Assembly (NCBI GenBank): GCA_965649825.1
Contig: OZ287700.1
Coordinates: 1,302,001-1,366,000 of the forward strand
Source: Penicillus capitatus
Taxonomy: Eukaryota; Plantae; Chlorophyta
Direction: 5' to 3'
Length of the DNA: 64,000 nt
Below, one piece after another: positions 1 through 57,554 of this stretch (position 1 is the stretch's first letter; each line of letters starts with the position of its first letter). The translations under genes and the position numbers were made by a program. The notes beneath the pieces are model-generated. The model worked only from the letters and a program-made list of their open reading frames with translations. It searched no databases and was not told where the DNA came from.

Positions 1-576
1 CCCCGACGAGTAACGAGGGTCTCTGTCCTGGAAGCTGTGAAAGCGTTCGTCGTACGTGAAGCGCACGAAGTAGTCCGTGTCCGTCGGAATGCTGTCCGCG
101 TTGCAGAAGGCGACCTTCACCTTTCTGTGTCCAAACAGTCAACAGTCAAACAGCGAAGGGCGGCTGTACGCTCACACCTGTAAATCGTGCCGACCGGAAC
201 GACATCATTCTCTCCGTTGGGTTGCAGAAAAAGCTCGCGTGCGTCGAACGAAATGGCTTCCAGCGTCGGAAGCTGATCTCCGCCGAAAACGTCGTTAGCG
301 ACGCAGAACCACTGCGCGATAAACTCCTCGTTCTGACATGCATACGGAAATACGGTTGGGTAGGTTCTGGGGAAAACGAACGCTGCGAATCTCGACAACG
401 CGGCACACCCAGACGCGATTGTCGTTGCGCTGCAGACCGCCGTACTCCGCGAAGACCTCGACGCACTCTCCGACTTCAACCTGGACCACAGTACGTTCGA
501 CTGCCTCGAGTTCCGAGTCCCTTACCTCGAATGCCAATGAAGGATCGTCGAAGTCGACCAAAAACACGCGTTGCAT
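1..576 (-). CDS. 5' exons (BAH domain) of a second copy of the CMT-like methyltransferase, running off the window
   Basis: Mirror of 59053-59628 (VEVGECVEV..WVCRVVEI, FIAQWF..DARELFL, YFVRFTYD); the remainder lies outside the window. Confidence 0.8.
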
Positions 577-3026: not shown

Positions 3027-3080
3027 TCCTCGCCGCCCCTTCTTCCTTGTCTGTTTGTGTACAACGCTCACTGTAAGACG

Positions 3081-4169: not shown

Positions 4170-4187
4170 CGGACGGCGAAGGGAGGA

Positions 4188-6296
4188 TTAGAACAGGAAG
4201 TCCGATGTGACAGTCATCGCCCAGCCGAACTTTTGCAGCAGCGTGTTGGTGTAGATCTTCTCGATCGGCATCTCGTGGCGCTTGCACCAGGCGACGGAGA
4301 TGCGGGGATCGAGGTAGTTGATCTTGGACGTCCCGAGGGCGACGGTCTTCAGGCTCTCCTTGTTCTGCATCTGCACCTGGACCCTCTCCCTCTGCGCCGC
4401 CTTCTTCTCGCGGCGCTTCTGCAGAACGGCGAGCTGCTTCTGGTCCCTGGAGCTCGCTGCCCCCTTCAGATCGCCGATGGCGTCGTCGATCTCGCGGATC
4501 TCCTGCTCGAGCTGGGAGACCTTCTCCGTCAGACGCTCGATCTGGTTGCCGTGCGTCTTGGGCACCGCCCTCTGGTGGTTGCACAGGATCGCCACCTGCG
4601 CACACGGAAGTCCCGGATCTCGGCGCGCCGATCGGGTTCGCGGACCTGCTTGTTGGCCTCGTCGTAGGCCGACCGCTTGCGCTCGACCGGGAGCTGTGCG
4701 TCGAGTTCGGCCTCGAGCTGCTGCTGCAGCGTGATGGACGCGTTGTACGTGCGGAACACCTTGGCAGAGAGCCCGTCCATCAGCTCCTTCAGCTCCCTGT
4801 TCAGGTCCTGCGCGTCGAACAGGTCGAACAGCTGGTCGCCCGGCTGCTTTCCTGCACACAGAGCCCGGGTGGTCGTCGAAGAGGCGTCCATCTGTCCCCT
4901 TACGCGTCCCGTTCCTCCGACAGGTGCAGAAGCCGGCGACGTTGTTGTAGACCTGCTCGTCCACCTTGACCGTGTTCTCGTAGCGGATGGAGTCCTTTCC
5001 GAGGAAGTCGAACCTGATGCGGTTCGGCTGGATGCACTCCACGTTCTCGACCTGCAGGGAATCGCCGCCGCCGCGGGGACGGGTCCGGAGGAGCGGACCT
5101 TCAGCGTGCAGCAGCCGACCGTGTCCGCCTCGTCCTCGTCCTTCTCGTGGCCCGCCCTCAGCGCCAGGCGGTCGATGAAGTACAGCGCCGTGCCCATCTG
5201 CCTCTTCTGCGGATCCTCCGACGTCCAGTCGGCCCGATACTTCTCGCGGATGCGGTCGATGTGCTCCTTCAGCTTCCTGGCCTTCTCGTACTTGGCCATG
5301 TCGTTCTCGCTCTTAAAGGTGCTGTTCGCCGCCAGGAACACGTACTTGAAGTCCTTCGGCGATATGGGATCCTTCCAGAAGGCCAGCCAGGTCACGGCGT
5401 CGTCGTGGCGGACGGCCTTCCAGGACTGTCCGGGATATGGGTGCTCCGGGATCGGCGCGTCTGGACCTATGTTGATCGTGATGTCCCGCGGGTAGATGCG
5501 CCTCTTGATGCGCCCCATCTTCGGATGCTCGCCGCGTCCGCGGAACAGACCCGGGGGCTCCACGCGAAAGTTGCCAACCTAGACGGGCATCCTCGGGCGC
5601 GGCCGCCCTCGAAGACGTTCCGATGCCCACCTGCTCTGGCTGTCCGTCGACCAGGGCCGTCTTGTACTTCTCCTCCGCCTCCTGTTTCCTGAGGCGGATC
5701 TCCTTCTTCTCCTCCTTCGACAGGGCCTTGCTCTTCTGCTTCTCGGCCTGGTGCCACTCGTGGATGGGCCCGAAGTCGATCCTGTCGAACTCCTGGATCA
5801 TGTGATCACCGCCCAGCAGTGCCCGGAAGTCTTCCCAGAAGTTCTTGACGAAGACGGGCTTCCCGGCGTAGTCCGTGTCCAGCATGACCGCGAAGAACGT
5901 CGCGGCCTCCTCCTGCTCCGGCGTCAGATCGACAGGGCGGCCGTCGTAGAGCGGCTTCACGCCGTGGGGCTCGTACTCCGGCGGAAACATGACGCCGTTG
6001 TGCTGCAGCGTGTTCCACCTCTTCTTCACCTCTGCGGACGGGAACTCCTGGAAGGGGGTTGGGAGGGTGTCGAGGGGACTACCGGCAACGCGCTTCTTCC
6101 TGTCGGCCCCGCGCTCTTCGGAAGCCTCGCGCTTTCGCGTCCTGCCGGGGGCTCTGCGTCTGTGGGAGGAGGGGGTGGACTGGCTCGACATCGCGGTCGA
6201 GCTCTTCCGTCCGCTGTACCGCGCACTCAGAGACAGCTCGTCCTCGGACTCGTCGTCGCTGAGCGACATATCCGCCGAGCTCGAAGCACTCGACAT
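4188..6296 (-). CDS. TOP1: DNA topoisomerase I (type IB), left copy
   Basis: WxTLQHNGVMFPPEY, EPPGLFRGRGEHPKMG, YFIDRLALRAGHEKD..ADTVGCCTL, FDFLGKDSIRY, AKVFRTYNAS, and catalytic GTSKINYLDPR; introns about 50 bp. Confidence 0.97.
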
Positions 6297-6663
6297 ACTC
6301 GCAGGGATTCTGCTGCCACCGAGTACGGACAGGCAAGGCAGTTGTGAGTGGACGCGCAAACGATTGGCTGAATTCGCATCATTACAGGGACAGCGATACT
6401 GACAGCGACAGCTGCCGCATATAGGTAAGGAGGCTGTTTATGACTTATTGTATGTACGTTGAATGTGAAAAGGCAGGATTACAGCATAGGCGAACAGTCT
6501 CTGGAAAGATCTTCTCGAGTTGACTTAACTTGCTTCAGAAATCATCGAGACGGGACTGAGCAACAGATGTTCCAAGATATCCACGCCAAGATCTACTAAG
6601 CCATCCACCCTCTTGGTTGTCTGAAGAAGATCCTTCGTCCATACTAAAACACAAGACACTGCA

Positions 6664-18982: not shown

Positions 18983-20338
18983 TTACTTCGATAGCGATGA
19001 GAGTATAGATGACTCTGGAGAATGGGTTCTTGCAGTTCTTGGTGGCAGACTTCTTTTTGTCTTGCTTGCTTTGATTGGATTAGGTTTCGGTATCACCGTG
19101 GAGTCTATCTTCCACTCGTTGTATGCTCGCCACCAATGCCTCTCGTCTGTAGGTCTTTACGTCACATCATTTACAGCAGTTACCGTTCGAAGATGTGTCG
19201 GATCGATGCTCTAGAGAGACTGTTGCACATCTTGGAGGTATTGTGTTTCCTTCCAGCTTATAGTTGTTTGTGATGCCCTCGATGGCGTAGCGGCCATTTG
19301 GAAGGGAAGGATCATCCAACACACAAAAGACCCATGGAAGCTCCGATACATAGTTTCCAGAACCGTCTTCAGTTCTGGAGCGATCCAGAGTGCCGGAAAC
19401 CTTCTAGTCTCCAATCCCAGACAGATCTCCACCGACTCACCTGGACAGCAGATGATTGATTGCCTGAAAGAGAAACGATGCTGACCTGCGAGGGTCTTTA
19501 ACGAACAATGGCTCAAGATCTTCACGAATGCATCCTTGGAGATGTCCAACTCGCGGACGACGTCCACAGCCTGAAGGAAATCTTGTGTGTCGTCTGGAGT
19601 CTCCGCTCGAGATGCTTCTGCCTCTTCTGCCTTCTCTTCTTCAACTTCGTCTTCTGCCTTTTCCTCTGCCTCCTCTACCTTTTCTTCAGTCTCTGACTCC
19701 TAGGGAGCCGGAACGGAGGCATCTGAAAGACTGCTCGGCTGCCAGGGCTCTAGAGAGACACAAACGGGATGTTTCTTTCGACCGACATTCTTCGAGGGAG
19801 ACCGAAGGCGGTGCGCTCCGAGAAGTTGTTCAGCTCCAGTCGGATCTCTTCTTCGTATGCGCGCTGTATAGCCACATCTTCTGCAAGCTCGTCCCGCTGC
19901 TGTTCCTCATTGTTAGCAGCCGTGTTCGGAGGCAGTTCAGATGCAGCGGCCGGTGCCAAGGGCACTGGTTCAGCAGGCGTCGTTGCCAGATCTCCTTCCT
20001 GACCCGGTTCGTCGTCGTAGATCTGATGCTCCATATATGTCGAGTAGCTCGAATCCAAGGCCGAGGCGGCATTGACAGTTTCCGAGTCCGCAGGCGAGAG
20101 CATCATTTCCGAAACCACGGGACCCAGAACAGACGACTGGATCTCGTTCTGCACGCTCTCATCTCCTAGACCCGCACAGACATTGCTGCAATGCCAAGGG
20201 ACCAAAGCGAAAACGTGTGTAGGTCTGGGCGACGGAGATCGTGTCGATCTGTCCGGGCGGGAAGTAGCACTGGTAGGCGGAGAGAAATCCCCCGTCGGAC
20301 GAAATCAACGTCAGCTGCGCAGCAATTTCCACGACCAT
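18983..20338 (-). CDS. Hypothetical acidic/low-complexity multi-exon protein
   Basis: Joinable exons: MVVEIAAQ..RFRF|GDESVQ.., an E-rich tract (EKVEEAEEKAEDEVEEE), and ..ELPWVFCVLDD..WWRAYNEW..SLSK*. Confidence 0.5.
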
Positions 20339-20498
20339 CGAACGAGCGAAGGCGTTCCAGACGAACCTGGAGAGGATAGTGCACCTCGCGTTCCTTCAGG
20401 TCTCCTTCAACGATGACGTGCAGAAGGATACCACATCGACCAGGGTTGATCACGCTTTCGACCCAGAGGTCCTGCTTCATCTGTGTGGAGAGAATCTG

Positions 20499-21532
20499 AT
20501 GCTCCGGCGTGTGGTTTCCGCCGTACTGCGAACGCCTTTCGTCCGAACGCGAATCGACGCGGCCTCGCGTCGCGGAATCGCGAGGGCGACGGCGCATGAC
20601 CGTTTGCTTTACTGGGGGTCGGGATCTGTCTACTGCTGGCGAGCGATGATCGTCTTGGAAGAAAAGGGGCTTCCGTACGAGGGCAAACTTCTCGAATTTT
20701 CAAAGAGTCGCATCCTTCTCCCCATCTCTGTCACAGACAACATGTTGTAAAATCTAGAGGAGCACAAATCACCAGAGGTCATGGCGTTGAATCCGAGAGG
20801 ACAACTTCCAACGTTTAAAGATGGAGATGTCGTGCTGAACGAATCGGGTGCCATCGTCATGTACTTGGAGAACCAGTATCCTGAAAAACCGCTTCTCCCG
20901 TCGACTCCGGTCGAAAAAGCAAAAGTCGTTGTTGCACGCACATCCCCTATCCTTCGACGGATGCTCGGCCCAGGTGTTACAGCGATGCTTCGAAGCCATC
21001 GTAACAGACATGAAGCAACGAAACTACACTTATTCTATGGTAGGGTATCGATCTGTTAACCAGCAGGAAGCATCCGAATCGTGTCACAGAGGAAGGAACT
21101 GGAGAATCAACATGCTCAGCAGCAGATCGAAGAAATCAAGGTATGGTCGACCGACTGGAACATCAGATCAGCACTGCGTGCCTCCAGGCAGAGATGGCCC
21201 TGTGGGATGCATATCTGGGTGCGCAGAGATACGCAGCAACAGACGCATTCACTCTCGCAGGTACTGCTCCTCGGCAACTGTATCTTTCTGCAAGTGCCAC
21301 GTTTCGCTAGATGCGATGTTGGCGCCGATGCTCTTGATTCTGGCAAGGTTTGGAATGTCATTCAAAGACTATCCTAACGTAAAAAAGTACTGCGAGATGA
21401 TACGGGCAAGCACGGATCTCGCTTGTTCGTCCCTGAGCTGTGTGTGTTCAGGACTATCCATCTGTGACGAAGACCTCTCCCCCACACTGGGTTGGCGCCG
21501 AACCTGCATATTCGTTCATGAATTTTCTGTAG
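20499..21532 (+). CDS. Glutathione S-transferase, rho-class-like, with Arg-rich targeting peptide
   Basis: LYWGSGSVYCWRAMIVLEEK, EHKSPEVMALNPRGQLPTF, LNESGAI, FTLADAML, ending PSVTKTSPPHW; final intron inferred as GC-AG. Confidence 0.9.
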
Positions 21533-21761
21533 TCTTGGATATTCTTTCTTCGATTTGAATGACACTCGGCAAGAGATGCCATTGGGGTGGCAGTAGTATA
21601 CAATGAAACTTCTTTGTGGTTTTCTGAGTCCTGCATGTTTAAAGCGAGTCGATCGAACACACCTCTAGCAACCTGGACTGGGATGCATAAGGGACGTCTT
21701 ATACTGATCTTCGACGCGTTCGTTATCGCGAGCTACATCGTCTACTCTGTCTGTACAGTCG

Positions 21762-21925
21762 CCACAAATGAGATGGCTAAACAGCTTAACAGGTGTCTGT
21801 ACAATTGCCACAAATGAGATGGCCTAAACAGCTTAACAGGTGTCTGTACAATTGCCACAAATGAGATGGCCTAAACAGCTTAACAGGTGTCTGTACAATT
21901 GCCATTAATGAGATGGCCTAAACAG
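21762..21925. repeat. 47-bp tandem repeat, about 3.5 copies
   Basis: CCACAAATGAGATGGCCTAAACAGCTTAACAGGTGTCTGTACAATTG starting at 21762, 21808, 21855 and 21902. Confidence 0.95.
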
Positions 21926-22139
21926 AGAATCCCTCTTTTTATTAAACAGAACGGGACAGAATGCAATCGAATCAGCACTACATCACCAAGGTTATAAAAT
22001 CTAGTTTGTTTAAGTCCAGAGTTTTTAAATGCCCAAAAGATATGCAAAAACGCCATATAATTATTCGTCCAGAGGTAATTGATAATACCGCCCAACAACT
22101 GAAATGCACGGGATCGGCTTGATAAAAGGCTGTCTGCTG

Positions 22140-22555
22140 ATGTCAGATCGAAAACTATATGCTGCTGGAGGCTGCTGGAGGCTTCATCTCAGGTAAGTCA
22201 TCCCCATCACATGCTGTTGGATGTCGGATCGAAAATGTTGTATGCTGCTGGAGGCTGCTGGAGGCTTCATTGCAGGTAAGTCATCTTCGTCATAGCTGTT
22301 GGATGTCGGATCGAAAATTATATGCTGCTGGAGGCTGCTGGAGGCTGCTGGAGGCTGCTGGAGGCTTCATTGCAGGTAAGTCATCTTCGTCATAGCTGTT
22401 GGATGTCGGATCGAATAGGTTGTATGCTGCTGGAGGCTGCTGGAGGCTTCATTGCAGGTAAGTCATCTTCGTCATAGCTGTTGGATGTCGGATCGAAAAT
22501 TATATGCTGCTGGAGGCTGCTGGAGGCTGCTGGAGGCTGCTGGAGGCTTCGTCAT
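22140..22555. repeat. 80-100 bp minisatellite with internal (GCTGCTGGAG)n, 5 units
   Basis: Units begin GATGTC(A/G)GATCGAA at about 22140, 22220, 22302, 22402 and 22484; decamer copy numbers are 2,2,4,2,4. Confidence 0.93.
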
Positions 22556-22862
22556 TAGATATTGGACGCTCGATCGCAGGTCCTGGTCTTCATCGCACGC
22601 TCTCGGATGTTCGATCTGATAGGTGGTCGTCTTCATCAAAGCCCTCGGATGTCCGATCGAATGGTTGATCGTCTTCATCGATGTCCTGGTCTTCTTCGCA
22701 AGCTCTCGGATCTCATATTTGATAGGCAGTGGTCTTCATAGCAAGCTTTCAGATCTCGTATTTGATAGGCAGTGGTCTTCATCGCACGCTCTCGGATGTT
22801 CGATCTGATAGGTAGTCGTCTTCATCATAGCCCTCGGATGTCCGATCAGAGGCTGCCAATGT

Positions 22863-23440
22863 TTCATCGTCGGTCGTCGTCTTCATCGATGGGCTGTCCG
22901 ATTCCGGATCATAGATCAGAGGCTGCCAGTTGCTTCATCGTCGGTCGTCGTCTTCATCGATGGGCTGTCCGATTCCGGATCATAGATCAGAGGCTGCCAG
23001 TTGCTTCATCGTCGGTCGTCGTCTTCATCGATGGGCTGTCCGATTCCGGATCATAGATCAGAGGCTGCCAGTTGCTTCATCGTCGGTCGTCGTCTTCATC
23101 GATGGGCTGTCCGATTCCGGATCATAGATCAGAGGCTGCCAGTTGCTTCATCGTCGGTCGTCGTCTTCATCGATGGGCTGTCCGATTCCGGATCATAGAT
23201 CAGAGGCTGCCAGTTGCTTCATCGTCGGTCGTCGTCTTCATCGATGGGCTGTCCGATTCCGGATCATAGATCAGAGGCTGCCAGTTGCTTCATCGTCGGT
23301 CGTCGTCTTCATCGATGGGCTGTCGAGTTTCGGATCGTAGGATGTCTGCTGCCAGATGCTTCATCGTCGGTCGTCGTCTTCATCGATGGGCTGTCGAGTT
23401 TCGGATCGTAGGATGTCTGCTGCCAGATGCTTCATCGTAG
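22863..23440. repeat. 71-bp tandem satellite, about 8 copies, preceded by degenerate related units (22560-22860)
   Basis: TTCATCGTCGGTCGTCGTCTTCATCGATGGGCTG.. starts every 71 bp from 22863 to 23431; the last two units are a variant. Confidence 0.97.
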
Positions 23441-24063
23441 GTTGTCGGATGTCGGCTTCGTCACGTGTCGTCTCTTGTCAATACAGCTGATCATGAGAGA
23501 ATATACAGTAATTCTCTTCAACGACGCCCTTTTGGCCAGCATAATGAGATTGCTTCCTCGGCACATTTCTCCAGGTCTCTCAGAGCTTCACAGAATTCAC
23601 TGGCTGATGAACTAACACTCTGACCTTGTAAGACATCTCTTCTTGATGGGCAACACTTGTGCCAATAGACCAGCTTTTGACGCAAGTGAAACCCTTTGCA
23701 TCGGCTGTGTTGGATTATGTTGAGCAGAGATCAATCGATGAACTGATCTCTACAGGCGATGCAGTGATGCTGATCGAGGCAGTCATCTGTGTTGCCTTCT
23801 GTCCGTATCAAATCTCGGTGACCAGCTAAATCCTCTCAAACGGTAATTGATCGATCTTCCACGACAAGACTTCACACATCAATTCTCCACAGTGTCCTCC
23901 ACAAGGATCCGAATCTTCTGGCCTGTCTGGAACATCACATTCAGCTTATTTGCATTCTAAGGTTCCATACCTTTGGCATTATATATCAGGGGAAGAACAG
24001 TTGCTTCGCATTTGCGGAAGACGACTCGGGTAGGCGCGTTGCTTTAGGCTTGGATAGTTATGC

Positions 24064-24275
24064 CATGTGCAGGACTGCGCCGATCTGCATCAAGGCAGAT
24101 CGACGGCAGACTCATGCACATGGCAGTAGCTATGGCCTCTTGAGCCGCCTCCATGTGCAGGACTGCGCCGATCTGCATCGAGGCAGATCGACGGCAGACT
24201 CATGCACATGGAGTAGCTACGTACAAGGTCTGCGTCGATCTGCATCGAGGCAGATCGACGGCAGACTCATGTACA
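24064..24275. repeat. 88-bp tandem repeat (two full copies plus one partial) with an internal hairpin
   Basis: CATGTGCAGGACTGCGCCGATCTGCATC.AGGCAGATCGACGGCAGACTCATG at 24064 and 24152, partial at about 24232; GATCTGC..GCAGATC forms a stem. Confidence 0.9.
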
Positions 24276-26799
24276 CGCCCCTTGTTACCATGGGTTGACT
24301 GACGTCTGCATGCTTCATGCGTCTCCTCTTCGACTGGCCATGTCGCCGGTTTCCAGCAGCGTCGTGTCTACGTTGTCATCATATCCACCGTCTCCTGTCA
24401 CAGGCGTCGCGTCGCTATTGACGATGGCATGTCGCTCGGCGACGGCTATCTTCTCATCAAACCATCGAGAGCTTCCAGCCCGTCAATATCCGTCCACTGT
24501 TGCTGTAGTCCTGGTCAGGACGGACGACCAATCATCTCGTCCATAGCTACATCGAAACACAGGGTTCTGAAAAATGAACGGCGTCCCTCTGCACTTACCA
24601 TGGTTGTCTGACGGTCGACGGACAACCATCAGGCGCCATACCACGATGCGGTGCCCATTCCATTGTCGTCTTCTGAAATGTCCCTTGTCCATTGCGCCGG
24701 GGACAGTTTGGTACCTGCATGGCTCACACTGGATTCTCTGAGAAGCTCCATCCTTAGCTACCTCTGTCGATTCAGACGTCAACCGTCCCATGCCGCGCGT
24801 CTCCGAGCCCCCCGGCGGTCCAGAGGACAGCCGCACCGGATTCCATTGTCGAGTCCACCACACGCATGACCCACGTTCTGGACAGTTCCGAGTCGATCCT
24901 TTCGGTCGCGGAGGGCGAGTTTTCGTCGACTGGCGACCTGCAAGACGCAAATGAACGTCGGGTAATGTGAAGGAATTGCCCACGAGGGCAGGAGGAGAGA
25001 TTCGACTCACTATCGAAGGCGCACGCGGACGGAGTGCCGAATGGCTGGAGTCGGCTTCCGATCTCTATCCAGCAGATCCTTCTTGGTGGGCGAGTGCGTT
25101 GAAAGGCAGCGGCTTGGACAGCGGTAGACGAAAATTGTCCAGAGAGCGGCGACCGGGAAGCGTTTCTGCTGGAAAAAATAAACGCAGCGAGAAACGTCCA
25201 AAACTCGAAGAAACGAAAGAAGCAATACAATTCAGAAACGCCCAGGGTTTTGACCGCAAATGACAGTCGCAACCGTGTGAGGCAGTTAGTGATGGCGACG
25301 TAATCACCAACGACGAAGCCGCCGAGCAATAAGCAAGCGCTAGACTCGACTGAAACGCTTCCAGCATCCAAATCTCCTGCTGTGGAACAGACTGTGCCGT
25401 TATCCAGTCACATGTGAAGGAATGTTATTTCTCGAGGATCATGCAGAAGTGGCGGTTATGACTGGCACATGAGAGGCTGCATGCAAAATCGAACCGGATA
25501 TCCATTTCTGGCGTTTAGCAAATCATGTTCTAGAAATCACTCTGTACCTATTGCATCTCAGTACTGGTTTGAGACTCGCTGTCATACAAGTATCAAAGAA
25601 ATGTAACCATTTGTGCTCCTTATCTTCGAGTGATCAAAGGGCGAGGTAAGACCCTCTCAAGGATGTCTTCATTAGAATCGCGATCAATCACTTGACAGCA
25701 CGAGTTGTTGATTTCTCATCTGAGCACTCTTCTGATGATACGACAATGGCCAACATAAATTGATTTAGGATGGTATGAATTGGTTATTGGTTTGATGGTG
25801 ATCACCTGGTGTGCACGTCGAAATATTGGCGCGTAGCTCTCTGAAACGATCTGGCGAACTCTCTACCTACTTGGGCGCCGACCTAACCTCTAAAATCCGA
25901 AAGACGGTCTCCTTTAACGATTCTTGCTTTTCGCGGGCCGGAGATTTCCAATGGATCTTCTCTTGACAGTATGTCGTCAGTGGCAGACCGAGACACCTTT
26001 TCCTCTGGCGCTATCTTGGAAAGATCTACATATTGGGGACAATCACACCTATTCATACAGGATCTATATCTGTCGGGTTTTGTGGATATCATCTGCTTTA
26101 GCATAGATGGTCACACCTTCACTTTTATGAACTCGTTGAATTGTATTGGCGGCGACGAGGTCAAGGAACCAGATGTAACTCGAGAGATATCTGTTGAAGC
26201 CGTTTACCTTATGAATTCTCGCAGCCCTTTACATGTGGAGCTGGACAATCTGTGGGTGTTTTGACCTTTACTAGATCTCCACCTCTTGCCACAGCTGGCA
26301 CTCGGCCTTGTCTGCCAACACATACTACTTGCCTGTACGCTAAACACGATACAAACCCTCTAAAAAGACGGCCTGTCTTTCGTGGACCATCCTAAGGGCA
26401 ATGTGGACGTGCGTTTCGGAGCAACGTAAATGTGACCAAACTTGTTCTCGGCCACCTGAGGTTATCGTTTCATGGTCCTTAAATGGTTAGTGATTTTCTG
26501 GGAGATTCAGAGGTCAGACCGGAAGCGTTCTCGTCGCGTCGAGACGCCTTCCACAGCTCCACTGACGACTCTGAAGATCGTTTGGATCAAGGGGATCCGA
26601 ACGGACGTTTCCAAAAACGGCTCAGCCTGTGGCGGCGAGTGGATAGATCGCTCCAGCGGTCACACCGCAGCGATTTGGGTTCCTGTCTCTGCAACGCGTG
26701 GTTGCATGAGATGGAGTCTGACAATGAATGACAGAAATCCAGGCGTCCAGATGGAGTCGTCTGGTCCATCAAATGCGAGTTACGTTCGTGCGGCGTCCA

Positions 26800-29700
26800 A
26801 TGATGCGCAGTCGACTGCCCTGTCGAGTGCGTTGCGCGCTCAGCGTCCGAGTCGCCCCTCGACGTCCAACAGCTCGACGTCGGCTGTCGTCACGAACGCC
26901 GACGCGTGACGGCCGTCCCGTTCACTGCTCAGAAAAGTACGCGTTGCCCTCTGCATTGTGGGGCTTTCGTGAAGAGGCGTGACAGGAAACTCATCTCCGT
27001 CTCCGTTGTCGAGAATGAAGTCGAGAAAAGCAAAGAAGAGAAACCTAGACGTCGATCTGTGAGTCCAAAATCACGGATGAAGGCCGTGGCCGAAAAAGTG
27101 AGCGCGGCAAGGGAACTGGCACGGCGACTTGCAGAAGAGAAAGAAGCAGCTGTCAAGACCGGAAAACAATACAAGTACTCAGATCGATCCCTCATGTTAC
27201 CTGACATTTAACATGTCTCAGTGAACGGATTCTGAAATCCACAGAGGCGGCTGCTACTGAGGCAGCCATACAAGCAGCTGAAGCAGATGCTATGAACAGA
27301 GCTGTAAGGCTGGCAGAAGCGGGAAAAGAAAAGGTCGCTCCACGATTCTGTCGTACACACCTTCGACAGCTGTTTTCAGGACGCCGAGTTGCGTTATTTG
27401 AAAAAGTTCAACAAAGCTTTGAAGGCAATGGTATTGGATGTTGCCGTGGATAAAGATGAAGCAAGGAATAGACTGGATGAACTGCTTCAGGAGTTCAAAT
27501 CCGCCGAACTGGTGACAGAGGTGCATCGTCTGACCGTCGCTATGCCCGAACTGTTTTTTATCATTCTTAAGGAGGAAAGATTGGCAACAGAGGAGGAAGA
27601 AGCAGAAGAAGTGGTAAAAGCAGCGCCAGAAGTGGAAGTCCCCTCGCCACCCGTCCCGGAGGTCAGAATCAAACTGCCAGGCCGTAGTCAGAAGGAATGC
27701 TGTTCAGGTCCCGGTGGAGGAACCTAAGTTGGATACCCTCAAAGTCGCGGCAGATGCTGCTCTGCAGTCGGACACACCTTTCTTCACCGTGCCTTCTGAG
27801 CCACCGATCGGAAAACCTATTCAGTTTCTATACAATCGTCTGGCCGGTCCTTTGCCAGAAACGGATTCTGTTTCTATCAAGTACGGAATCAACAAGTGGG
27901 AGAACATTGGGCATATCAAGATGAAGCGAAGCGAGACGTTAAGTGACATGGCGGGTGAGTGGTGGGAAGCGGATCACGATTTGGAACCCTTGCTCTATCG
28001 ATTCGATTTTGTCATTGTGGATGATGTCTCTGGACTCGTGGATAACAACAACTCCAAGGATTTCTATCTGAAGCTCAAAGGTGTGCTGACAAAAAGTCAG
28101 CTCTTGGAGAAACGTCTGGCGCTCTTCGATGAGATTGAACAGAAACGAAATGCCGAGTTCGAGGCCAAGATTTCTAGACTCAAGTGACACCACTGATTTG
28201 TCGTTTCGGTATCGTTCATGGAAGATTCAAGGTAAGAAGCCGAAACTAAGGCGGAGGAGGCAGGCAATGAGGCTCGAGAATCTGTCGTTGCTGAATGGGA
28301 GGCAGAGCTGACGGAACGCGTTTTAGAGACGATCGGAGATCGAAGAGCTCAGGCCATCAAGGCACTAGGACGAGAGGAAACGATCAAGGGACCACGAGTG
28401 GCCTGGTTTGGAGATCTGACGCCTGGAAGTCGCGTCCTATTGACCTACAACTCGAACGAAGGGCCTCTGAAGAATGCAACTACCATCCGGGTGCATCTGG
28501 GAACAGACAATTGGTACAAGGAGCAAATTGACGTAAGGGATCTGCCAAATTGTGTGATCGAATTGAGGTGTCGAATTCAGATAAGAGAATTGAAAAAACT
28601 GTCGGCGGAAGAGATACAGAAGAACAGAGTGGCAGAGGAATGTGGACCAGGTAACTGGTGGGGCATCCCGATCGACATTCCTGTAGAGATTGCCGTGATG
28701 AATTACGTATTCGACGATGGAAAATCTGCCGAGTGGGACAACAACAATGGACGTGATTACACGACTCCTATCTCTAATCCCTTAACACACGATCAACTCG
28801 TCGAAAAGAAAAAGGACGATGTGCGAAATGAGTTGACGGAAGAAAGGACACAACGCGTCGAGGGAGCCGCCACAGCCGCCAGAGACCGCATTCTCTCACG
28901 CGTAAGGCCGTCGATAAACGTGGTGCATGGCTGATGTGACGTTGATGTAGTTCGATTCGAGATTCCATCGCTGGCGTTCTCAGTGGCAGTACCTCTACAC
29001 CGATCCCATTCGAGTACAGGCTGGACAGTCTGTCGAAATCTGCTATCGCCCGGATCTGACGGTCTTGCGCGGTCGACCGGATGTCTATGTCCGTGTGGGG
29101 TTCAATCATTGGAGGCATCCAACGGGTATCCGTGCTATTAAGTTGGAGCCGATGATTGCCAATAACGTTGGATTTGAGCGTGTTGTTATCGATGTGCCAG
29201 AGGATGCACACGACATGGACTTTATGTTTTCTGACAATCCCGATCTCCACGGCGGTTTTGTCGACAACAACCATGGCTTCAATTATAATTTTCCTGTCCA
29301 TGGCAGCTCCGTTGCCCCACAACCGTTGAAGATCGTTCATGTCACGGTGGAAATGGCGCCGATTGCAAAAGTGGGCGGGTTGGCCGATGTGGTCACGGCA
29401 CTGGGCAGAGCTGTACAAGAAGAAGGGCACAATGTCGAGATCATCATGCCCAAGTATGACTGCATCGACTACGGCCAAGTGGAGAAGCTGGAGAAGCGTC
29501 GCAGCTTTAATTTTGCTGGAAGCCATGTTCAAGTCTGGGCCGATTTTGTGGAAGGACTGAATGTGACGTTTATCGAACCGGACAACGGCATCTTCTGGGT
29601 CGGGTGCATTTATGGAGAGCAAAATGATGGTCAGCGATTTGAATATTTCTGTGGAGCCGCCTCAGAGTATCTCCGCATTTTCAACCTCTCTCCAGACATC

Positions 29701-30153
29701 GTTCACTGTCACGACTGGCAAACGGCTCCCGTGATCTGGAGCGATCTGGCAGGGGCAAGAACCGTGTTCACGATACACAACATGAACTACGGTGTGGAGT
29801 TGATCGGTCGAGCAATGCATGCCACGACGGTTGCTACGACCGTTTCCCCAACCTATGCCACAGAGATCAGCGGGATGCCAGCAGCGGAGTCCAATTTCGC
29901 AAAGCTCTACGGTGTGCTGAACGGCATCGATGTGGACATTTGGGATCCATCTCGAGATCGGTTCTTGCCCATGAACTACAACGCAGAAACGGCCGTCGAA
30001 GGCAAAGCCGCTGTGCGTCAAGAACTCAGAAAGAGACTCAATCTCGCACAGATCGATGTTCCCATTGTGGGTGTCGTCACCCGCCTCACTCCACAGAAAG
30101 GCATCCACTTGATCAAACACGCTGCGTGGAGGACACTCGAACGCGGAGGACAG
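26800..30153 (+). CDS. SS3: Soluble starch synthase III (three CBM53 modules plus GT5), truncated at the 3' end
   Basis: Transit-peptide-like start and three CBM53-like modules. Contains KIVHVTVEMAPIAKVGGLADVV, HCHDWQ, GVLNGID and RLTPQKGIHLIK. Homology stops abruptly at LERGGQ; the C-terminal half of GT1 (EPCGL..AMRYG) is absent. Confidence 0.9.
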
Positions 30154-32060
30154 TACAGAGATCTCTGGGACTTGCCAGGGACGTAGTACGTCGCCCATGG
30201 ATCGGTGGTTCCGATGACGGTGGCACGTGTCTTGCAGGGGTAGCCGATGTACACCACCTGCTCCTTGAGACTGTCAAACACCTGTCGCAGGAAACAGGGG
30301 AACTGCTCATCCGTCGGTTGGTCGCAGAATCGACCTTCTTGGCACCCCCAGGCCAGTTGTAGCTGTCTCCGGACACTTCGATGACAAGACTCTCGCGCTC
30401 ACACTGTCGAGCGTAGCGGTCACACTTCATTTGCATCATGCAGCACTTCAACTGCACAGAAACTGAGTCGCGCGCCGTTGGAACTGCCATCTGACTTGCA
30501 GGACGGTATCGAGTGTCGGGAAACTGGGCGGGAACGGCAGCGAAGGACCTGATGCAATCGATGGTCGAAGTTCACGACATGGTGCTTGACAGTGCGGAAC
30601 CTTTCTGCCAGGGAGATGTCCTTTCGCGAACAGGCCGTGACCACAGGACTGTAGATCCGCAGGAGCACTTAACATCCTGGTAGTTGTTGATCGTCGACGT
30701 GCAGTAGCTCTTCGCTTTGCTCTCTGCACGAAATCACACGTTTCACACGAGAGGTGCTGCTGCGGAGCGCGACGGTGATTCGGGACGAAGATGTGCTGGA
30801 AGCCGTTGTCGAGGAGGGTCTGATCCGGCCAGATCTTTTTCTGTACGCCCTTGAACCTGCCGATCGTCTTCGTGATCCGATAGTAGTTGAAAGGACGGAT
30901 CAGGAGCTTGTTCTCTTGGTCGTTCCACGCCCCCTCGATGTCGACGGAGAAGTCCAGCTTCGACCTGGAAGCCACACGCGTCAGGGAACATGCAACAGAG
31001 ACACTGTCGACGACAGGGTGTCCTTGTAGAGCTTCCTATAGCAGGACTCGTCGTCTGTGACCATGCACTGGTGCGTTTCCGGCAGAAAAGAAGCATCCAT
31101 GCCGGGGAGGACGCACAGGAGATACTCCAATCGGGTCATGGCCGGCTCCTTCTCCAGTTTAACTGGACAGCGATCGCGTCGTCGACAAGAGAAGCAAGAG
31201 AGCACTCGACCTTCGTGCTCCGAGATGGATGCCAGGTCGGACAGCGTGGGTGCATAGAGCTCGTGGTACGCGCAATCCCAATCCACAGTCTGCTTCGTCA
31301 GGTATTCGTAGTACCAGATCCGGGCACTCGAGAAGTAGGACGCCGCCTCCTTTATCGCCTCTTTGTGTTGCTCCTCGATCTTGAGCTTCATCGTGTAGTA
31401 CCAGTTCTTCCACCACTCATACGGACCGTCGTGGTAGTAGATCAGGATGGCGGCGCCAGGGAGAATGAGAGTGAGATTCCTGGGCGCTTTTCCAGACACC
31501 TGCAGCTTCTCCCGGAAACGAAGACGGTCGAGTTCCTGTTCTCTGTGCCGATGAGGTGGATGAATGCCTCGAAGTTGATCAGATTGATCGTTCGGTCTGC
31601 GTTCGTGGGATAGGGGACGGCCGACTGCCCGCATTCCGTTCCGCTGTAGCCCTGCGAGCAGAGCGTGGGACGCAGAAACTCCTTGTAACAGTCCAGAAGC
31701 TCATCGAGACTCCCCTCCAGCAGATGCAGCGTCGGAATGCCTGCGACACCATCGCGGTGAGAGCGAGACGGTGGATCGGAGAGGGATACGGGGAATGATG
31801 GTCCTGCTTCCAAAGAACGTGTTGAAAAGCAGAAAATCGTCCAGACTGCGTTCCGCATCCACCTCTGCGTTCAGACGCTGGAGCTCCTATTCCCAGCAAT
31901 CCCTGAACAGACTAGCACATCAATGGTAAGATCGGTTGACGTCCTCTTCGGAGACGCGCACTTCAAGTACTGGATGACAAAGTCTTCCTCCTTGAGATCG
32001 TCCCGAGTGGTCTGCGCATCTCGCTCTCTACGAGATCACCGCACAGAATCGAAAGCGTGC
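30154..32060 (-). pseudogene. Divergent XRN1-like 5'-3' exoribonuclease fragment, truncated at both ends, with a probable in-frame TAG
   Basis: ERSLDDFLLFNTFFG, PTLHLLEGSLDELL, WYYEYL..YAPTLSDL, EYLLCVLP, DFSVDIEG, FPPSFPTL and VVYIGYP follow the order of XRN conserved blocks; clean introns of about 50 bp. Confidence 0.65.
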
Positions 32061-32481
32061 ATCAGAGAGTACGACGCTCTTACGACAGAGCACCTTCGAA
32101 CTCTGCAGTTTTGTGTACCTTGTTACATAACTTGCTTTTGTGAGGTCTCAGGTTGCAACTTTCGCGTTTTGCGGTTCTTGATCTTTGTGAAGCCCCATGA
32201 CAGCTGGGTGCCAACTCGACATCGTAGGTCTCCGCGATTTTAGAATCTGCACGACCATTGGCAAAACTAAACCAAGGTCGGAATCTTCAATGTCCTATCC
32301 GGACGGATACAGGGCATTAATTCGCAGCTCCGTGGCGGTATTCGCCATTGCATTTCTTGTTTTTGTTTAATCGACTCTGTCGACGACGCAAACCAACATC
32401 GGTCACGCGAAAGAAAGATCCGAGAACCTTTTTCTACGTCCATAAAGAGCGAAGATTGTCCATGAAAACGTGAAGTTCATC

Positions 32482-52451: not shown

Positions 52452-53331
52452 GCAGCTGGAACTGCGCAACACATTCGCCTCAGTGCGTTGTGTGCCATAC
52501 GCGATCCCGCGACTTACATTGCGAGAACGGAAAATGAAACGGGTCGTGGACGAGAGGGCCGGCCAAGCCTCACTTAGTCGACCTTCGACGAACAGTTTCC
52601 GTGGTTAACGCTGTTTAGAGGTTAGGGATTGTCAGAGAGGTCCGACACAAATGTTATTCTCGAAAAAGATTGAGCTTGAAGTCAGTTCGTCGATTCGGAA
52701 AAACGTTTGCGATGCTGTGAATGCAGGGACTTGTATGCGCAGTAGATGCACATTACATGAGGTTGTAGTGCCCCCGCATGACATCGAGAATTGCTAACCG
52801 ATTGAGATGCATCACAAGGGTTGACGCGTATCGACTTAAAATGCCGTTCTGATAGTCAGGTGATGGATCCTTTTTGTCGGCGATGACTCGAAGAAGGAGT
52901 GCATGGCGTAATAACACGCAAAGGCTAACTTACATTCGAAAACATAACCGTCCGACACGGTTCGATGTTGCCTGCCATGTCTGACACCGCGTTGACAAAG
53001 AAACGTCACATCACTCACCTGCTGTACAGAAGAAGCAAAATCAGCAACCAATCTCTCAAAGTCAGCCACACGTGTCTCGATGATTACTGAAGGGAGTTAT
53101 GTCTACTCGAGAAGATCTTTCCAGAGACTGTTCGCCTATGCTGTAATCCTGCTTTTTCACATTCAACGTACATACAATAAGAAGCCATAAACAGCCTCCT
53201 TACCTATATGCGGCAGCTGTCGCTGTCAGCATCGCTGTCCCTGTAATGATGCGAATTCGGCCAATCGTTTGCGCGTGCGCTCACAACTGCCTTGCCTGTC
53301 CGTACTCGGTGGCAGCAGAATCCCTGCGAGC

Positions 53332-55440
53332 ATGTCGAGTGCTTCGAGTTCGGCGGATATGTCGCTCAGCGACGACGAGTCCGAGGACGAGCTGTCTCTG
53401 AGTGCGCGGTACAGCGGACGGAAGAGCTCGACCGCGATGTCGAGCCAGTCCACCCCCTCCTCCCAGAGACGCAGAGCCCCCGCCAGGACGCGAAAGCGCG
53501 AGGCGTCCGAAGAGCGCGGGGCCGACAGGAAGAAGCGCGTTGCCGGTAGTCCCCTCGACACCCTCCCAACCCCCTTCCAGGAGTTCCCGTCCGCAGAGGT
53601 GAAGAAGAGGTGGCACACGCTGCAGCACAACGGCGTCATGTTTCCGCCGGAGTACGAGCCCCACGGCGTGAAGCCGCTCTACGACGGCCGCCCTGTCGAT
53701 CTGACGCCGGAGCAGGAGGAGGCCGCGACGTTCTTCGCAGTCATGCTGGACACGGACTACGCCGGGAAGCCGGTCTTCGTCAAGAACTTCTGGGAAGACT
53801 TCCGGGCACTGCTGGGCGGTGATCACGTGATCCAGGAGTTCGACAGGATCGACTTCGGACCCATCCACGAGTGGCACCAGGCCGAGAAGCAGAAGAGCAA
53901 GGCCCTGTCGAAGGAGGAAAAGAAGGCGATCCGCCTCAGTAAGCAGGAGGCGGAGGAGAAGTACAAGACGGCCCTGGTCGACGGACAGCCAGAGCAGGTG
54001 GGCATCGGAACGTCTTCGAGGGCGGCCGCGCCCGAGGCTACCCGTCTAGGTCGGCAACTTTCGCGTGGAGCCCCCGGGTCTGTTCCGCGGACGCGGCGAG
54101 CATCCGAAGATGGGGCGCATCAAGAGGCGCATCTACCCGCGGGACATCACGATCAACATAGGTCCAGACGCGCCGATCCCGGAGCACCCATATCCCGGAC
54201 AGTCCTGGAAGGCCGTCCGCCACGACGACGCCGTGACCTGGCTTGCGTTCTGGAAGGATCCCATATCGCCGAAGGACTTCAAGTACGTGTTCCTGGCGGC
54301 GAACAGCACCTTCAAGAGCGAGAACGACATGGCCAAGTACGAGAAGGCCAGGAAGCTGAAGGAGCACATCGACCGCATCCGCGAGAAGTATCGGGCCGAC
54401 TGGACGTCGGAGGATCCGCAGAAGAGGCAGATGGGCACGGCGCTGTACTTCATCGACCGCCTGGCGCTGAGGGCGGGCCACGAGAAGGACGAGGACGAGG
54501 CGGACACGGTCGGCTGCTGCACGCTCAAGGTCCGCTCCCCCGGACCCGTCCCCGCGGTGGCGGCGATTCCCTGCAGGTCGAGAACGTGGAGTGCATCCAG
54601 CCGAACCGCATCAGGTTCGACTTCCTCGGAAAGGACTCCATCCGCTACGAGAACACGGTCAAGGTGGACGAGCAGGTCTACAACAACGTCGCCGGCTTCT
54701 GCACCTGTCGGAGGAACGGGACGCGTAAGGGGACAGATGGACGCCTCTCCGACGACCACCCGGGCTCTGTGTGCAGGAAAGCAGCCGGGCGACCAGCTGT
54801 TCGACCTGTTCGACGCGCAGGACCTGAACAGGGAGCTGAAGGAGCTGATGGACGGGCTCTCTGCCAAGGTGTTCCGCACGTACAACGCGTCCATCACGCT
54901 GCAGCAGCAGCTAGAGGCCGAACTCGACGCACAGCTTCCGGTCGAGCGCAAGCGGTCGGCCTACGACGAGGCCAACAAGCAGGTCCGCGAACCCGATCGG
55001 CGCGCCAAGATCCGGGACTTCCGTGTGCGCAGGTGGCGATCCTGTGCAACCACCAGAGGGCGGTGCCCAAGACGCACGACAACCAGATCGAGCGCCTGAC
55101 GGAGAAGGTCTCCCATCTCGAGCAGGAGATCCGCGAGATCGACGACGCCATCGGCGATCTGAAGGGGGCAGCGAGCTCCAGGGACCAGAAGCAGCTCGCC
55201 GTTCTGCAGAAGCGCCGCGAGAAGAAGGCGGCGCAGAGGGAGAGGGTCCAGGTGCAGATGCAGAACAAGGAGAGCCTGAAGACCGTCGCCCTCGGGACGT
55301 CCAAGATCAACTACCTCGATCCCCGCATCTCCGTCGCCTGGTGCAAGCGCCACGAGATGCCGATCGAGAAGATCTACACCAACACGCTGCTGCAGAAGTT
55401 CGGCTGGGCGATGACTGTCACATCGGACTTCCTGTTCTAA
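53332..55440 (+). CDS. TOP1: DNA topoisomerase I (type IB), right copy
   Basis: Same motifs as the left copy, including GTSKINYLDPR; intact splice sites. Confidence 0.97.
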   Translation: MSSASSSADMSLSDDESEDELSLSARYSGRKSSTAMSSQSTPSSQRRRAPARTRKREASEERGADRKKRVAGSPLDTLPTPFQEFPSAEVKKRWHTLQHNGVMFPPEYEPHGVKPLYDGRPVDLTPEQEEAATFFAVMLDTDYAGKPVFVKNFWEDFRALLGGDHVIQEFDRIDFGPIHEWHQAEKQKSKALSKEEKKAIRLSKQEAEEKYKTALVDGQPEQVGIGTSSRAAAPEATRLGRQLSRGAPGSVPRTRRASEDGAHQEAHLPAGHHDQHRSRRADPGAPISRTVLEGRPPRRRRDLACVLEGSHIAEGLQVRVPGGEQHLQERERHGQVREGQEAEGAHRPHPREVSGRLDVGGSAEEADGHGAVLHRPPGAEGGPREGRGRGGHGRLLHAQGPLPRTRPRGGGDSLQVENVECIQPNRIRFDFLGKDSIRYENTVKVDEQVYNNVAGFCTCRRNGTRKGTDGRLSDDHPGSVCRKAAGRPAVRPVRRAGPEQGAEGADGRALCQGVPHVQRVHHAAAAARGRTRRTASGRAQAVGLRRGQQAGPRTRSARQDPGLPCAQVAILCNHQRAVPKTHDNQIERLTEKVSHLEQEIREIDDAIGDLKGAASSRDQKQLAVLQKRREKKAAQRERVQVQMQNKESLKTVALGTSKINYLDPRISVAWCKRHEMPIEKIYTNTLLQKFGWAMTVTSDFLF

Positions 55441-55458
55441 TTCTCCCTTCGCCGTCCG

Positions 55459-56547
55459 ATGGACTTCGGAACGTCTTCGAACGCGGACGACGCCCAGGAC
55501 GACTCCGACGCGCAGGCGCAGGCCGAGCTGCCGTGCACCCTCATGCGCGGCCTCCGGGGCCACGAGGGACCGGTCCTGGCCGTCCGTTTCAACGCCCAGG
55601 GCTCCTACTGCATCTCCTGCGGGAAGGTAGGCACCGTCGCACAGGCCTCGTCGAGCGAGGCGTCGTAAAGGATCGGACGGCGCGTCTGTGGAACCCCTAC
55701 CGCGGGCTGCTGATCAAGACGTACGCCGGGCACGGCTACGAGGTGCGAGACGCCTGCATCGCCGGAGACAACGCGAAGTTCGCGACCTGCGGCGCCGACC
55801 GCCAGATATTCCTCTGGGACGTCGCCAGCGGAAACACCGTCCGCAGGATGCGGGGCCACGACAGCACGGTCAACTCGGTGGTCTACGCGGCGGACGAGGA
55901 GGTCCTGGTGAGCGGAGGCTACGACAGGGTGGCCAACGTGTGGGACTGTCGGTCGCGCAGCGCGTCCGCCATCCAGCAGCTCACCGGATTCAAGGTCGCG
56001 TCCCCTCCCGACTGGCCGGGAGGGACGGTGCGCGGTGCAGGACAGCGTGACGTGCGTGGCGGCGTCGAGGTGCGAGATATTCGCATCGAGCGTCGACGGA
56101 GTGCTGAAGAGGTTCGACCTGAGGATGGCGCGCGCCTACATGGACCAGTTCGCAGAGCCCATCACAGGTCCGTCTCGGCCGGGGTGATCCTCAGTGCGTC
56201 AGGTGGGAGGTTCAGGTTTTGCCCTGGCGAGGGACGGGGCCTCCGTGCTCTGCGCCTGCATGTCGGATGCCCTGGTCCTGCTGGACAAGGCTGACGGGAG
56301 CGTTCTGGCCACGTACACCGGCCACCGCCACAGGAGCCTCAAGATCGAGTGCGGATTCACGCGCTCGGACGCCCACGTCTTCGCGGGGTCGGAGGACGGA
56401 TGCATCTTCCTCTGGGAGATGGTCGACGCGGTGGTCAGGAGGCAGCTCCAGGCGCACGAGGACACCGTCTGCTCCTGCACCGTCCACCCGGAACAGAACT
56501 CGCTGCTGACCTCTTCGACAGACGGGACGATTAACTTCTGGCAGTGA
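55459..56547 (+). CDS. WDR83: WD40-repeat protein WDR83/MORG1-like, right copy
   Basis: Mirror of 3081-4169; intact. Confidence 0.88.
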
Positions 56548-56601
56548 CGTCTTACAGTGAGCGTTGTACACAAACAGACAAGGAAGAAGGGGCGGCGAGG
56601 A

Positions 56602-57554
56602 TCACCGCTGTCCGTGCTCCTGCCAGTACTCGTCCTGCTCTGGCCACACCACACAGCGTCGCGCGGCGCGGGGCGACGGAGGGGAACTCACGGTACTGGT
56701 CGATCGCCCTCAGCGGATCCCAGTCGGCGACGGCCAGGTAGGCTTCGGCCACGAGCGCCTGGATCTTGAACCTGCGCGTCAGCATCAGAACCAGCTGCCG
56801 GCGGACGCGTTCTGCCTTCGGACTGGTGCTGCCGCCGAGCCACGACCGCGAGGCCGACGCGGCGTCGGCGGAGGCGTCTTCGTCCTCGAAGACGTGATCG
56901 GGAGGGTACAGCAGCATGTACTCGCGCTTGGCCTCGGCGGAGTAGTAGATCCGGCCGACCTGGCCTCCGATCTCCTCCCTAGAGTTGACTGCAGACGGCG
57001 ATCTGGAACGTGGGGGCGGGACTGCGGGACGCGACCTCGAACGAGCAGCTCCTTCCGGGACATGATGGCGTGCTCTGTCAGGATGTTGTTCGTGACCTTG
57101 AGATCCAGGACCGAGCAGCTGTACTTCACAGCCAGCTTAGCCAGCGAATCTCCCTTCTGCAGGACGTGTCGGCGGACGAAGTCGTTCAGACTGGCGGTCT
57201 GCACACAGGAGCGAGCTCGTATCGAGTGCGAGGAAGGGGACCGTCGCACTTCGAGGAAGGTGGGTCCTCTCGGGGTGCCGTTCACGCGAATCAGTCCCCA
57301 CTGCCTCATGAAACGCTCCTTGCGGACCTGGGGAGGAGCGCAGACGCGCGGGCTCGAGAGAGGAAGGAAGGGCCGCTCACCTCTAGCGCACGCGACACGC
57401 GCGACCACTGCCGGTTGACGGACTGTCCACGACGAGAGCCGCGTTCGAATCAGCGCCGGCCGAGGAGAGTGCTTACCTTCGCGAGCGCGTAGCTCTGCCC
57501 GTCGAGGCGTGTCAGAATCAGACAGAGTTCGTTGTCAGAGAGGTACTCCATCAT
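56602..57554 (-). CDS. F-box/LysM protein, right copy
   Basis: Mirror of 2074-3026; intact. Confidence 0.8.

Follow-up and report, generated by a model that had tools for sequence, protein, structure and literature searches.

A 9.6-kb GST-SSIII duplicate, probably inserted by break repair, splits an older XRN-like gene fragment in a green-alga-like genome

The window analysed here, a stretch of 64,000 nucleotides, contains the 5' part of an SSIII-like starch synthase gene that meets an XRN-like gene tail to tail, and the two very probably form a nested mosaic of non-processed pseudogene fragments that arose by a two-step duplication at the DNA level, the second step being accomplished by break repair. 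The donor, the acceptor and both junctions were identified, the order of the events was read from the divergence of the two pieces from their parents, the arrangement was found on two contigs, and both fragments carry marks of decay. The coordinates of the features are collected in the table.

The homology to SSIII stops in the middle of an exon, at 30153/30154, at a point where the genes of relatives read straight on. The ORF at 29065-30186 on the plus strand, with the full pre-junction string ..IVGVVTRLTPQKGIHLIKHAAWRTLERGGQ, reads ..AAWRTLERGGQ up to the junction and then YRDLWDLPGT followed by a stop, while the same exon in the closest relatives runs on beyond the junction point as ..ERGGQFVLLGSAPDP... 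In the three closest relatives (P0001-P0003, with identities of 93, 77 and 69%), ..ERGGQFVLLGSAPDPKI..EPCGLTQMIAMR.. lies inside the same exon-level ORF. As the exon is unbroken in these relatives, there is no intron at GGQ, and the SSIII gene was cut in mid-exon. Similarly, blastn alignments with the SSIII loci of relatives (L001 and L002) go no further than 30154. On the minus strand, the XRN-like frame ends with ..YVPGKSQRSLY, abutting the junction, and a match to XRN_M was found at 30984-31700 (Pfam, E = 1.7e-08). The tail-to-tail junction of SSIII and XRN reported in the earlier note is real, and its position is exact to the base. The loss of the essential C-terminal GT1 half of SSIII, also reported there, was confirmed, this half being absent from the entire window. 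The window copy has CBM53, Glyco_transf_5 and Glyco_transf_4 (Pfam) and no Glycos_transf_1 (PF00534), whereas full-length relatives have PF00534 beside Glyco_transf_5 (PF08323). A search for the missing 3' end of SSIII located it at the parent locus (L006, on ctg340460) and nowhere in the window. In the parent, the SSIII exon (P0127) reads GGQFVLLGS...EPCGLTQMIAMRY, and the following exon encodes the remainder of the GT1 half.

The 3' continuation of XRN, which had likewise been proposed as a target for searching, was found both in uninterrupted XRN copies and in the window itself. Locus alignment placed the XRN sequence that follows 30153 in the uninterrupted copies at 20526→19177 of the window, on the minus strand too. 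Since XRN is split around 20527-30152 in comparison with every uninterrupted copy, the window carries a 9.6-kb insertion, and 30153 is its right end. The rearrangement breakpoint that had been ascribed to break repair is a genuine one and corresponds to this right end. The nesting found is the reverse of the one that had been offered as a possible refutation, in which SSIII would continue via a distant exon with the XRN-like gene nested in an intron; here, the SSIII piece sits within the XRN fragment. Continuation through an intron at GGQ to a distant exon was excluded, as P0001-P0003 and the parent L006 have an unbroken exon here and the window holds no C-terminal SSIII sequence.

Table. Features of the nested XRN and GST-SSIII arrangement and of the surrounding window (positions in the window; strand left empty where none applies)
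Feature	Position	Strand	Basis or remark
Inverted repeat, left arm (TOP1, WD40 gene; GC about 65%)	1..6551		arm comparison
XRN fragment, 3' piece, direct continuation of the end at 30153	19177..20526	-	blastn, L007 and L004
GTAC, left copy of the duplicated target site	20523..20526		XRN ..CCGCCGTAC, then TGCGAACGCC.. of the GST/SSIII locus
Inserted segmental duplicate of the GST-SSIII locus	20527..30152	+	donor L006 1549-11090, ctg340460 (blastn)
GST copy without promoter and first 5 codons	20527..21374 (right limit approximate)	+	parent breakpoint, Pfam
Tandem-repeat arrays with 47, 83/182, 42-43 and 71-bp units	21748..23447		TRF
Insert stretch of 1.65 kb without similarity to the parent	24330..25982		blastn: self-match and allelic contig only
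5' part of SSIII-like starch synthase (CBM53 exons and GT5 N-terminal half)	26233..30153	+	cut after ..ERGGQ
Premature stop TAA (CAA = Gln in parent L006 and outgroup L001)	28233..28235	+	in the window and in ctg340425
GTAC, right copy of the duplicated target site	30153..30156		..GCGGAGGACAG, then TACAGAGATC..
XRN fragment, 5'/middle piece (XRN_M region)	30153..32076	-	95.9% to L007 9781-11705, blastn
Inverted repeat, right arm	53074..59628		also in ctg340425

The donor of the insert, a locus on another contig of the assembly to which the window belongs (ctg340460), was identified by blastn, with window positions 20526-24329 corresponding to L006 1549-4632 and positions 25983-30154 corresponding to L006 6918-11090. 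The match takes in introns and intergenic DNA, not just exons, and without gaps the identity to L006 reaches 98.3% over the unique 1.2 kb at the left end and 98.2% over the 4.2 kb of the gene part. The donor segment starts at GST codon 6 and ends midway through the large GT5 exon of SSIII, with its left breakpoint 15 nt past the GST ATG (L006 1534), and both of its ends are thus arbitrary points within genes. The GST copy retains a match to GST_N_3 at 20781-21056 (Pfam, E = 9.7e-08). In the middle of the insert, the tandem arrays vary in copy number in comparison with the parent and between both contigs (ragged alignments to L006, L005 and L011), the segment at 23448-24329 is only 94% identical to the parent, and the parent has 2.29 kb of other sequence in the place of the unmatched 1.65-kb stretch. 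These two anomalous segments (23448-24329 and 24330-25982) may leave room for later events or for a more complex origin. A much greater age of the upstream part of the insert, for which blastn identities of 87-92% could be taken, was rejected as an artefact of the tandem repeats, given the 98.3% identity of the unique left 1.2 kb.

The anatomy of the joins was determined by a three-way comparison of the window, the donor L006 and the uninterrupted XRN copies L007 and L003, all read along the plus strand of the window. The acceptor without insert reads ..CCGCCGTACAGAGATC.. unbroken in the paralogues L007 and L003 and in the gene of another species, L004, and the site in uninterrupted XRN is ..GGTTTCCGCC GTAC AGAGATCTC... 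The left join reads ..CCGCC GTAC and then TGCGAACGCC.., with ..TTGCTC preceding TGCGAACGCC.. in the donor, so that a C is common to both; the right join reads ..GCGGAGGACAG and then TACAGAGATC.., with the donor going on as ..ACAG TTCG.., so that GT is common to both. Depending on how these common bases are assigned, 1-4 bp of the GTAC duplication are certain. The string ACAG-T-ACAG pointed out in the earlier note is present, its first ACAG being derived from SSIII and its second from XRN. The microhomology suspected there exists as well, but it is not ACAG, as the only bases common to both parents at this junction are GT (30153-30154). Microhomologies of 1-2 bp are close to chance expectation.

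The whole XRN fragment corresponds to L007 9781-13066 only and is 94.7% identical to this parent. Its 3' piece, in the same orientation as the 5' piece, is 90.9% identical to positions 11702-13066 of the complete gene L007 and 77.8% identical to L004 11703-13105, and both L003 and L004 show the same split pattern against the window as L007. The fragment begins directly after the XRN_N exons of the parent; XRN_N was not found anywhere in the window, whereas the parent L007 has both XRN_N and XRN_M. Indels were scored where parent and outgroup agree, and 1-nt deletions were found at L007 10320, 11396 and 12891, the first of which lies within the XRN_M exon, near window position 31537, and constitutes a frameshift. 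An 18-nt deletion and small insertions were scored at such sites as well. In comparison with the parent, the 3' piece has lost 18 nt at one site and 1 nt at another and has gained 4 nt. The description of XRN as cleanly spliced could not be upheld, in view of the frame-shifting 1-nt deletions in the XRN_M exon and the absence of the XRN_N exons. Judged by its sequence, the fragment is a pseudogene and not a functional XRN1/2-type 5'-3' exoribonuclease. An intact XRN-like gene is kept on ctg340425 (about 173 kb).

The SSIII-like copy is 83.8% identical to L001 and 98.0% identical to L006, both matches ending at 30154. The differences between copy and parent were polarised with L001 as the outgroup, which placed 27 changes over 4.17 kb in the lineage of the copy and 26 in that of the parent. 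The premature TAA at 28233 follows a ~50-nt GT..AG intron as the first complete codon of its exon. The position of this intron is backed by L002, where a canonical GT..AG intron occurs at the corresponding site and in the same phase; the introns are about 50 nt long. The codon changes in the exons of the copy lineage have a synonymous to nonsynonymous ratio of 13:12, against 79:15 in the L006-L001 orthologue comparison of the GT5 exon (Fisher P = 0.002), and changes private to one contig gave a ratio of 4:9 (P = 0.0001). The premature stop and the ratio of 13:12 against 79:15 contradict the statement that SSIII shows no decay; the copy is young, yet decayed, with relaxed constraint. The SSIII of the window is a pseudogene and not a functional SSIII-type starch synthase (GT5). 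A processed pseudogene (retrocopy) was ruled out, as introns and 5.7 kb of upstream DNA are kept in the copy and no poly(A) was found at either end of the insert. The organism is a eukaryote and green-alga-like: the best named matches of the SSIII exon were from chlorophytes, with identities of 60-63%, and from land plants, with identities of about 50%. An intact SSIII is kept on ctg340460.

The window corresponds to positions 1,093,847-1,157,846 of ctg340500 (1,169,807 bp) in a long-read, metagenome-style assembly (ENA ERZ25074695), with L008 matching at 100% over 21,122 bp. A second contig, ctg340425, overlaps the window from about 15.4 kb to 64 kb with identities of 99.2-99.7% (L005, L009, L011 and L013), differing from it by SNPs (0.3-0.7%), with 66 mismatches and 10 gaps counted in 18.4 kb, and by two additional insertions, a 5.2-kb Ty3/gypsy element at window 18761-18769 and a 4.0-kb TE at window 21530-21534. 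Their sequences give the two contigs the appearance of haplotypes, or of two strains, at a single locus. The right junction was found in ctg340425 as an identical 40-mer (L005), together with a 373-aa ORF (P0126) that has the same ..GGQYRDLWDLPGT end, and the left junction was found as an identical 61-mer together with an identical 143-aa junction-spanning ORF. As ctg340425 is not identical to the window but has both junctions, the joins rest on different reads; both contigs belong to one assembly (ERZ25074695) and were judged at the contig level, and they are independent in reads but come from one sample. No telomere repeats and no N gaps marking a scaffold join were found in the window, and an Rfam scan of the window gave no matches.

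Two other explanations of the junction were both anticipated in the earlier note. A chimeric join of unrelated regions during the long-read metagenome assembly could be suspected, given a tangled assembly graph in this region: the contig ends 12 kb beyond the window, and the window overlaps the beginning of a different contig. Such an artefact is extremely unlikely, as both junctions (30153 and 20526) recur base for base in the non-identical ctg340425 despite the SNPs, the gaps and the two TE insertions, the insertion shows a matching pair of ends along with a duplicated target, and the copy bears derived substitutions of its own (the 27 polarised to its lineage). The second explanation ties the break to the inverted repeat, with a fold-back or a break-induced repair between the arms producing the junction at the centre of symmetry. 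The arms are 98.9% identical and their axis lies at 29814.5, 339 bp from the junction, in agreement with the values of about 29814 and ~340 bp noted earlier. The chance of lying within 339 bp of the axis is P = 0.015 for one point in the spacer and P = 0.057 for four mosaic breakpoints, and the proximity is therefore within chance (1.5-5.7%). The partner junction at 20526, the left end of the insert, is 9.3 kb from the axis, and the axis itself falls in SSIII sequence that is collinear with the parent. The central 40 kb are not palindromic: no inverted similarity was found between 9.7 and 51 kb, including the surroundings of 29814 and 30153, and the only inverted similarity beside the arms is that of diverged LRR paralogues, which lie just inside both arms in inverted order, with 65-67% identity. 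These flanking paralogues suggest an older, larger inverted duplication. Moreover, a fold-back would set the arms at the junction and not 23 kb off. Lying 23 kb off to the left and to the right, the inverted repeat is a bystander to the junction, and a break linked to it is hardly conceivable. Motifs resembling a DNA methyltransferase, seen by eye at 59.5-62.5 kb, were not confirmed by Pfam.

The two-step origin, which is strongly favoured, would have begun with an older step (about 5% divergence) in which a 3.3-kb internal piece of XRN, without the XRN_N exons and the extreme 3' end of the XRN-like gene, was copied to the locus. In a younger step (about 1.8% divergence), a double-strand break at GTAC inside this XRN fragment would have been repaired with a 9.6-kb GST-SSIII copy from elsewhere in the genome, inserted in the opposite orientation; the joins would have used microhomologies of 1 bp (C) and 2 bp (GT), leaving GTAC on both sides. 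XRN has diverged by 5.3% and the insert by 1.8%, a threefold difference that places the XRN fragment first and the GST-SSIII insert later. The joins look as is usual after non-homologous end joining or after synthesis-dependent gap patching, by one of which the repair would have proceeded. The break may have followed the excision of a TA-targeting transposon, which a duplicated (G)TA(C) would fit. Alternatively, a single complex event of serial template switching (MMBIR or chromoanasynthesis-like) could have joined the XRN and GST-SSIII fragments at once, as each piece is a gene fragment with arbitrary limits, joined at very short microhomologies, and the XRN-like gene, present in three copies on one contig about 4% apart, has a record of local rearrangement in this genome. 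Nevertheless, this is improbable, since the divergences from the parents are threefold apart and XRN is taken up again at precisely the point where it broke off, with a short stretch duplicated, as fits an insertion into pre-existing sequence. Capture by a transposon, with the 9.6-kb unit as the cargo of a Pack-MULE, a Helitron or another gene-capturing element, is less likely still. The insert is flanked by a 4-bp palindromic duplication (GTAC), and the genome has active TEs, with two insertions polymorphic between the contigs. Captures of this kind end in terminal inverted repeats with a 9-bp target site duplication, or in 5'-TC...CTRR-3' with insertion at AT. Against such an origin, no terminal inverted repeats were found, the first and last 200 nt of the insert sharing only 7-nt chance matches, and Helitron-type TC...CTRR ends are missing from an insert that begins with TGCGAA... 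and ends with ...GGACAG. The only Pfam matches of the insert are to GST, CBM53 and GT5, and no transposase ORF was seen in it. In addition, the ends of the insert are the exact ends of homology to an ordinary gene locus, and synteny between this donor locus and that of another species holds from SSIII onward.

Since an intact SSIII (on ctg340460) and an intact XRN-like gene (on ctg340425) remain, no starch or RNA-decay phenotype is expected. The insertion says nothing about starch metabolism or about how the inverted repeat arose. It is very doubtful that the arrangement has a role of its own, either through cross-transcription of the convergent fragments (SSIII-sense / XRN-antisense) to dsRNA or siRNAs that would tune the intact SSIII or XRN-like genes or through a short N-terminal, starch-binding (CBM53) protein made up to the new stop. 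The locus presents an annotation hazard, as a gene caller would list a 373-residue "starch synthase" and a 217-residue "XRN", both of them dead fragments of genes that are intact elsewhere. The region of the genome is structurally active, with XRN copies that moved, polymorphic TEs and the inverted repeat.

The arrangement shares features with several known systems. As in non-processed (duplicated) pseudogenes, introns and flanks are kept, and truncation, a stop, frameshifts and relaxed constraint are observed; unlike the usual cases, two unrelated fragments are nested tail to tail. Gene fragments have been relocated and fused with other sequences, as happens in Pack-MULE and Helitron capture, but terminal inverted repeats, Helitron termini and an element backbone are lacking, and the ends coincide with those of the donor homology. 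An inverted repeat lies within the same 60 kb, as in fold-back inverted duplications; however, its arms are 23 kb off, the spacer lacks palindromy, and the loci that meet at the junction are unrelated. Similar repair products are known from plants. In rice, 41 of 56 non-collinear insertions showed microhomology of <10 bp and no TE signature, and one of these insertions measured 17.2 kb (PMC3615480); the "patching gaps" by double-strand-break repair in plant genomes is credited to Wicker et al. 2010 in the accounts given by PMC6097286 and PMC3615480. The present insertion has a donor that can be followed from end to end (with its middle partly diverged or replaced), a continuous acceptor and short microhomology. 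Like the gap-patching insertions of plants, it consists of a high-identity pair of donor and acceptor that includes non-coding DNA, with arbitrary breakpoints, microhomology of <10 bp, no TE ends and a size in the range of kb to tens of kb. Unlike the plant cases, it lies in a green-alga-like genome, its acceptor is an older duplicated gene fragment, and the empty site is known only from paralogues. The process is already well documented in grasses, and the window adds a new instance of it, a kb-scale gap-patching duplication in an alga-like genome that is resolved to donor, acceptor, both junctions and, in all appearance, two alleles.

The middle of the 9.6-kb insert, the copy of the GST-SSIII locus carried inside the XRN-like pseudogene fragment, showed no similarity to its counterpart in the parent locus or to the other loci fetched. 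The adjoining stretch (window 23448-24329) was 94% identical to the parent, against 98% at both insert ends, and the copy number of the dense tandem arrays varied between the window, the parent locus and the second contig, ctg340425, which overlaps the window but is not identical to it. Within window 25983-30154, C:G>T:A transitions predominated among the substitutions that followed the duplication, in the copy and parent lineages alike (16 of 27 and 12 of 25, respectively). In the TPR_12/TPR_10 region beside the XRN fragment, repeats at window 32830-34043 displayed internal similarity in both direct and inverted orientation.

Coordinates of the features discussed (window positions, except in the third column)
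Feature	Window	Other locus	Strand or orientation	Details
XRN-like loci, ctg340425		L003 209.7-230.6 kb; L007 163.5-184.4 kb
IR arms	1-6551 and 53074-59628			topoisomerase I gene and WD40 gene in each
LRR-protein paralogues	8760-9679 vs 52100-51181		inverted	65-67% nucleotide identity
Insertion 1, ctg340425 only	18761-18769	L011 11838-17077		Ty3/gypsy element
Insertion 2, ctg340425 only	21530-21534	L011 5044-9063		4.0-kb element
Dense tandem arrays	21748-23447			units of 47, 83/182, 42-43 and 71 bp (71-bp unit x8.5)
Insert middle	24330-25982 (1.65 kb)	parent, L006 4633-6917 (2.29 kb)
TPR_12/TPR_10 repeat ORFs	32806-33240		-	directly past 5' end of XRN fragment
Alpha-glucan water dikinase ORF	43998-47075		-	1026 codons, no introns; GWD1_pHisD and PPDK_N
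ORFs with cytosine-5 DNA-methyltransferase-like motifs	59491-62542		+	motifs spotted by eye

Of the two insertions, the Ty3/gypsy element retains an intact gag-pol ORF of 1467 aa and the other carries an ORF with a weak NDC10_II-like match. Since both are confined to one contig, the transposable elements of this genome seem to be polymorphic or still active at present.

The inverted-repeat (IR) arms have a GC content of about 65%, compared with about 50% in the surrounding region, and the topoisomerase I gene of each looks complete (Topoisom_I_N, Topoisom_I and Topo_C_assoc). Arm-to-arm identity was 100% over the outermost 1.9 kb and 94% at the inner edge. The arms were closer to each other within the window contig (98.9%) than the left arm was to that of the other contig (98.5%), which hints at gene conversion. 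The inverted LRR-protein paralogues flank the inner side of both arms and may be relics of a larger, older inverted duplication; further family members lie at window 11473-12780 and about 35.7-38 kb. The ORFs with methyltransferase-like motifs contain ..LELYCGCGG.., ..GGPPCQG.. and ..QIGNSVSPPLA.., and two fragments of them gave no Pfam match at E<=0.001.

The SSIII pseudogene and the dikinase ORF, which gives the window a second sequence related to starch metabolism, are 14 kb apart, a closeness that is probably coincidental.

Comparison of L003 and L007 with L004, the locus of a sister species, established that the XRN-like gene is relocated in this genome. The three XRN-like copies of this genome diverge from one another by about 4%. 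The complete gene (L007) adjoins an mTERF gene, about 46 kb from a 1.5-kb internal XRN remnant and in opposite orientation to it; this remnant is all of the gene that survives at the site where synteny with the sister species is kept, in the order DXR - XRN - Kelch - RSN1 - ELO.
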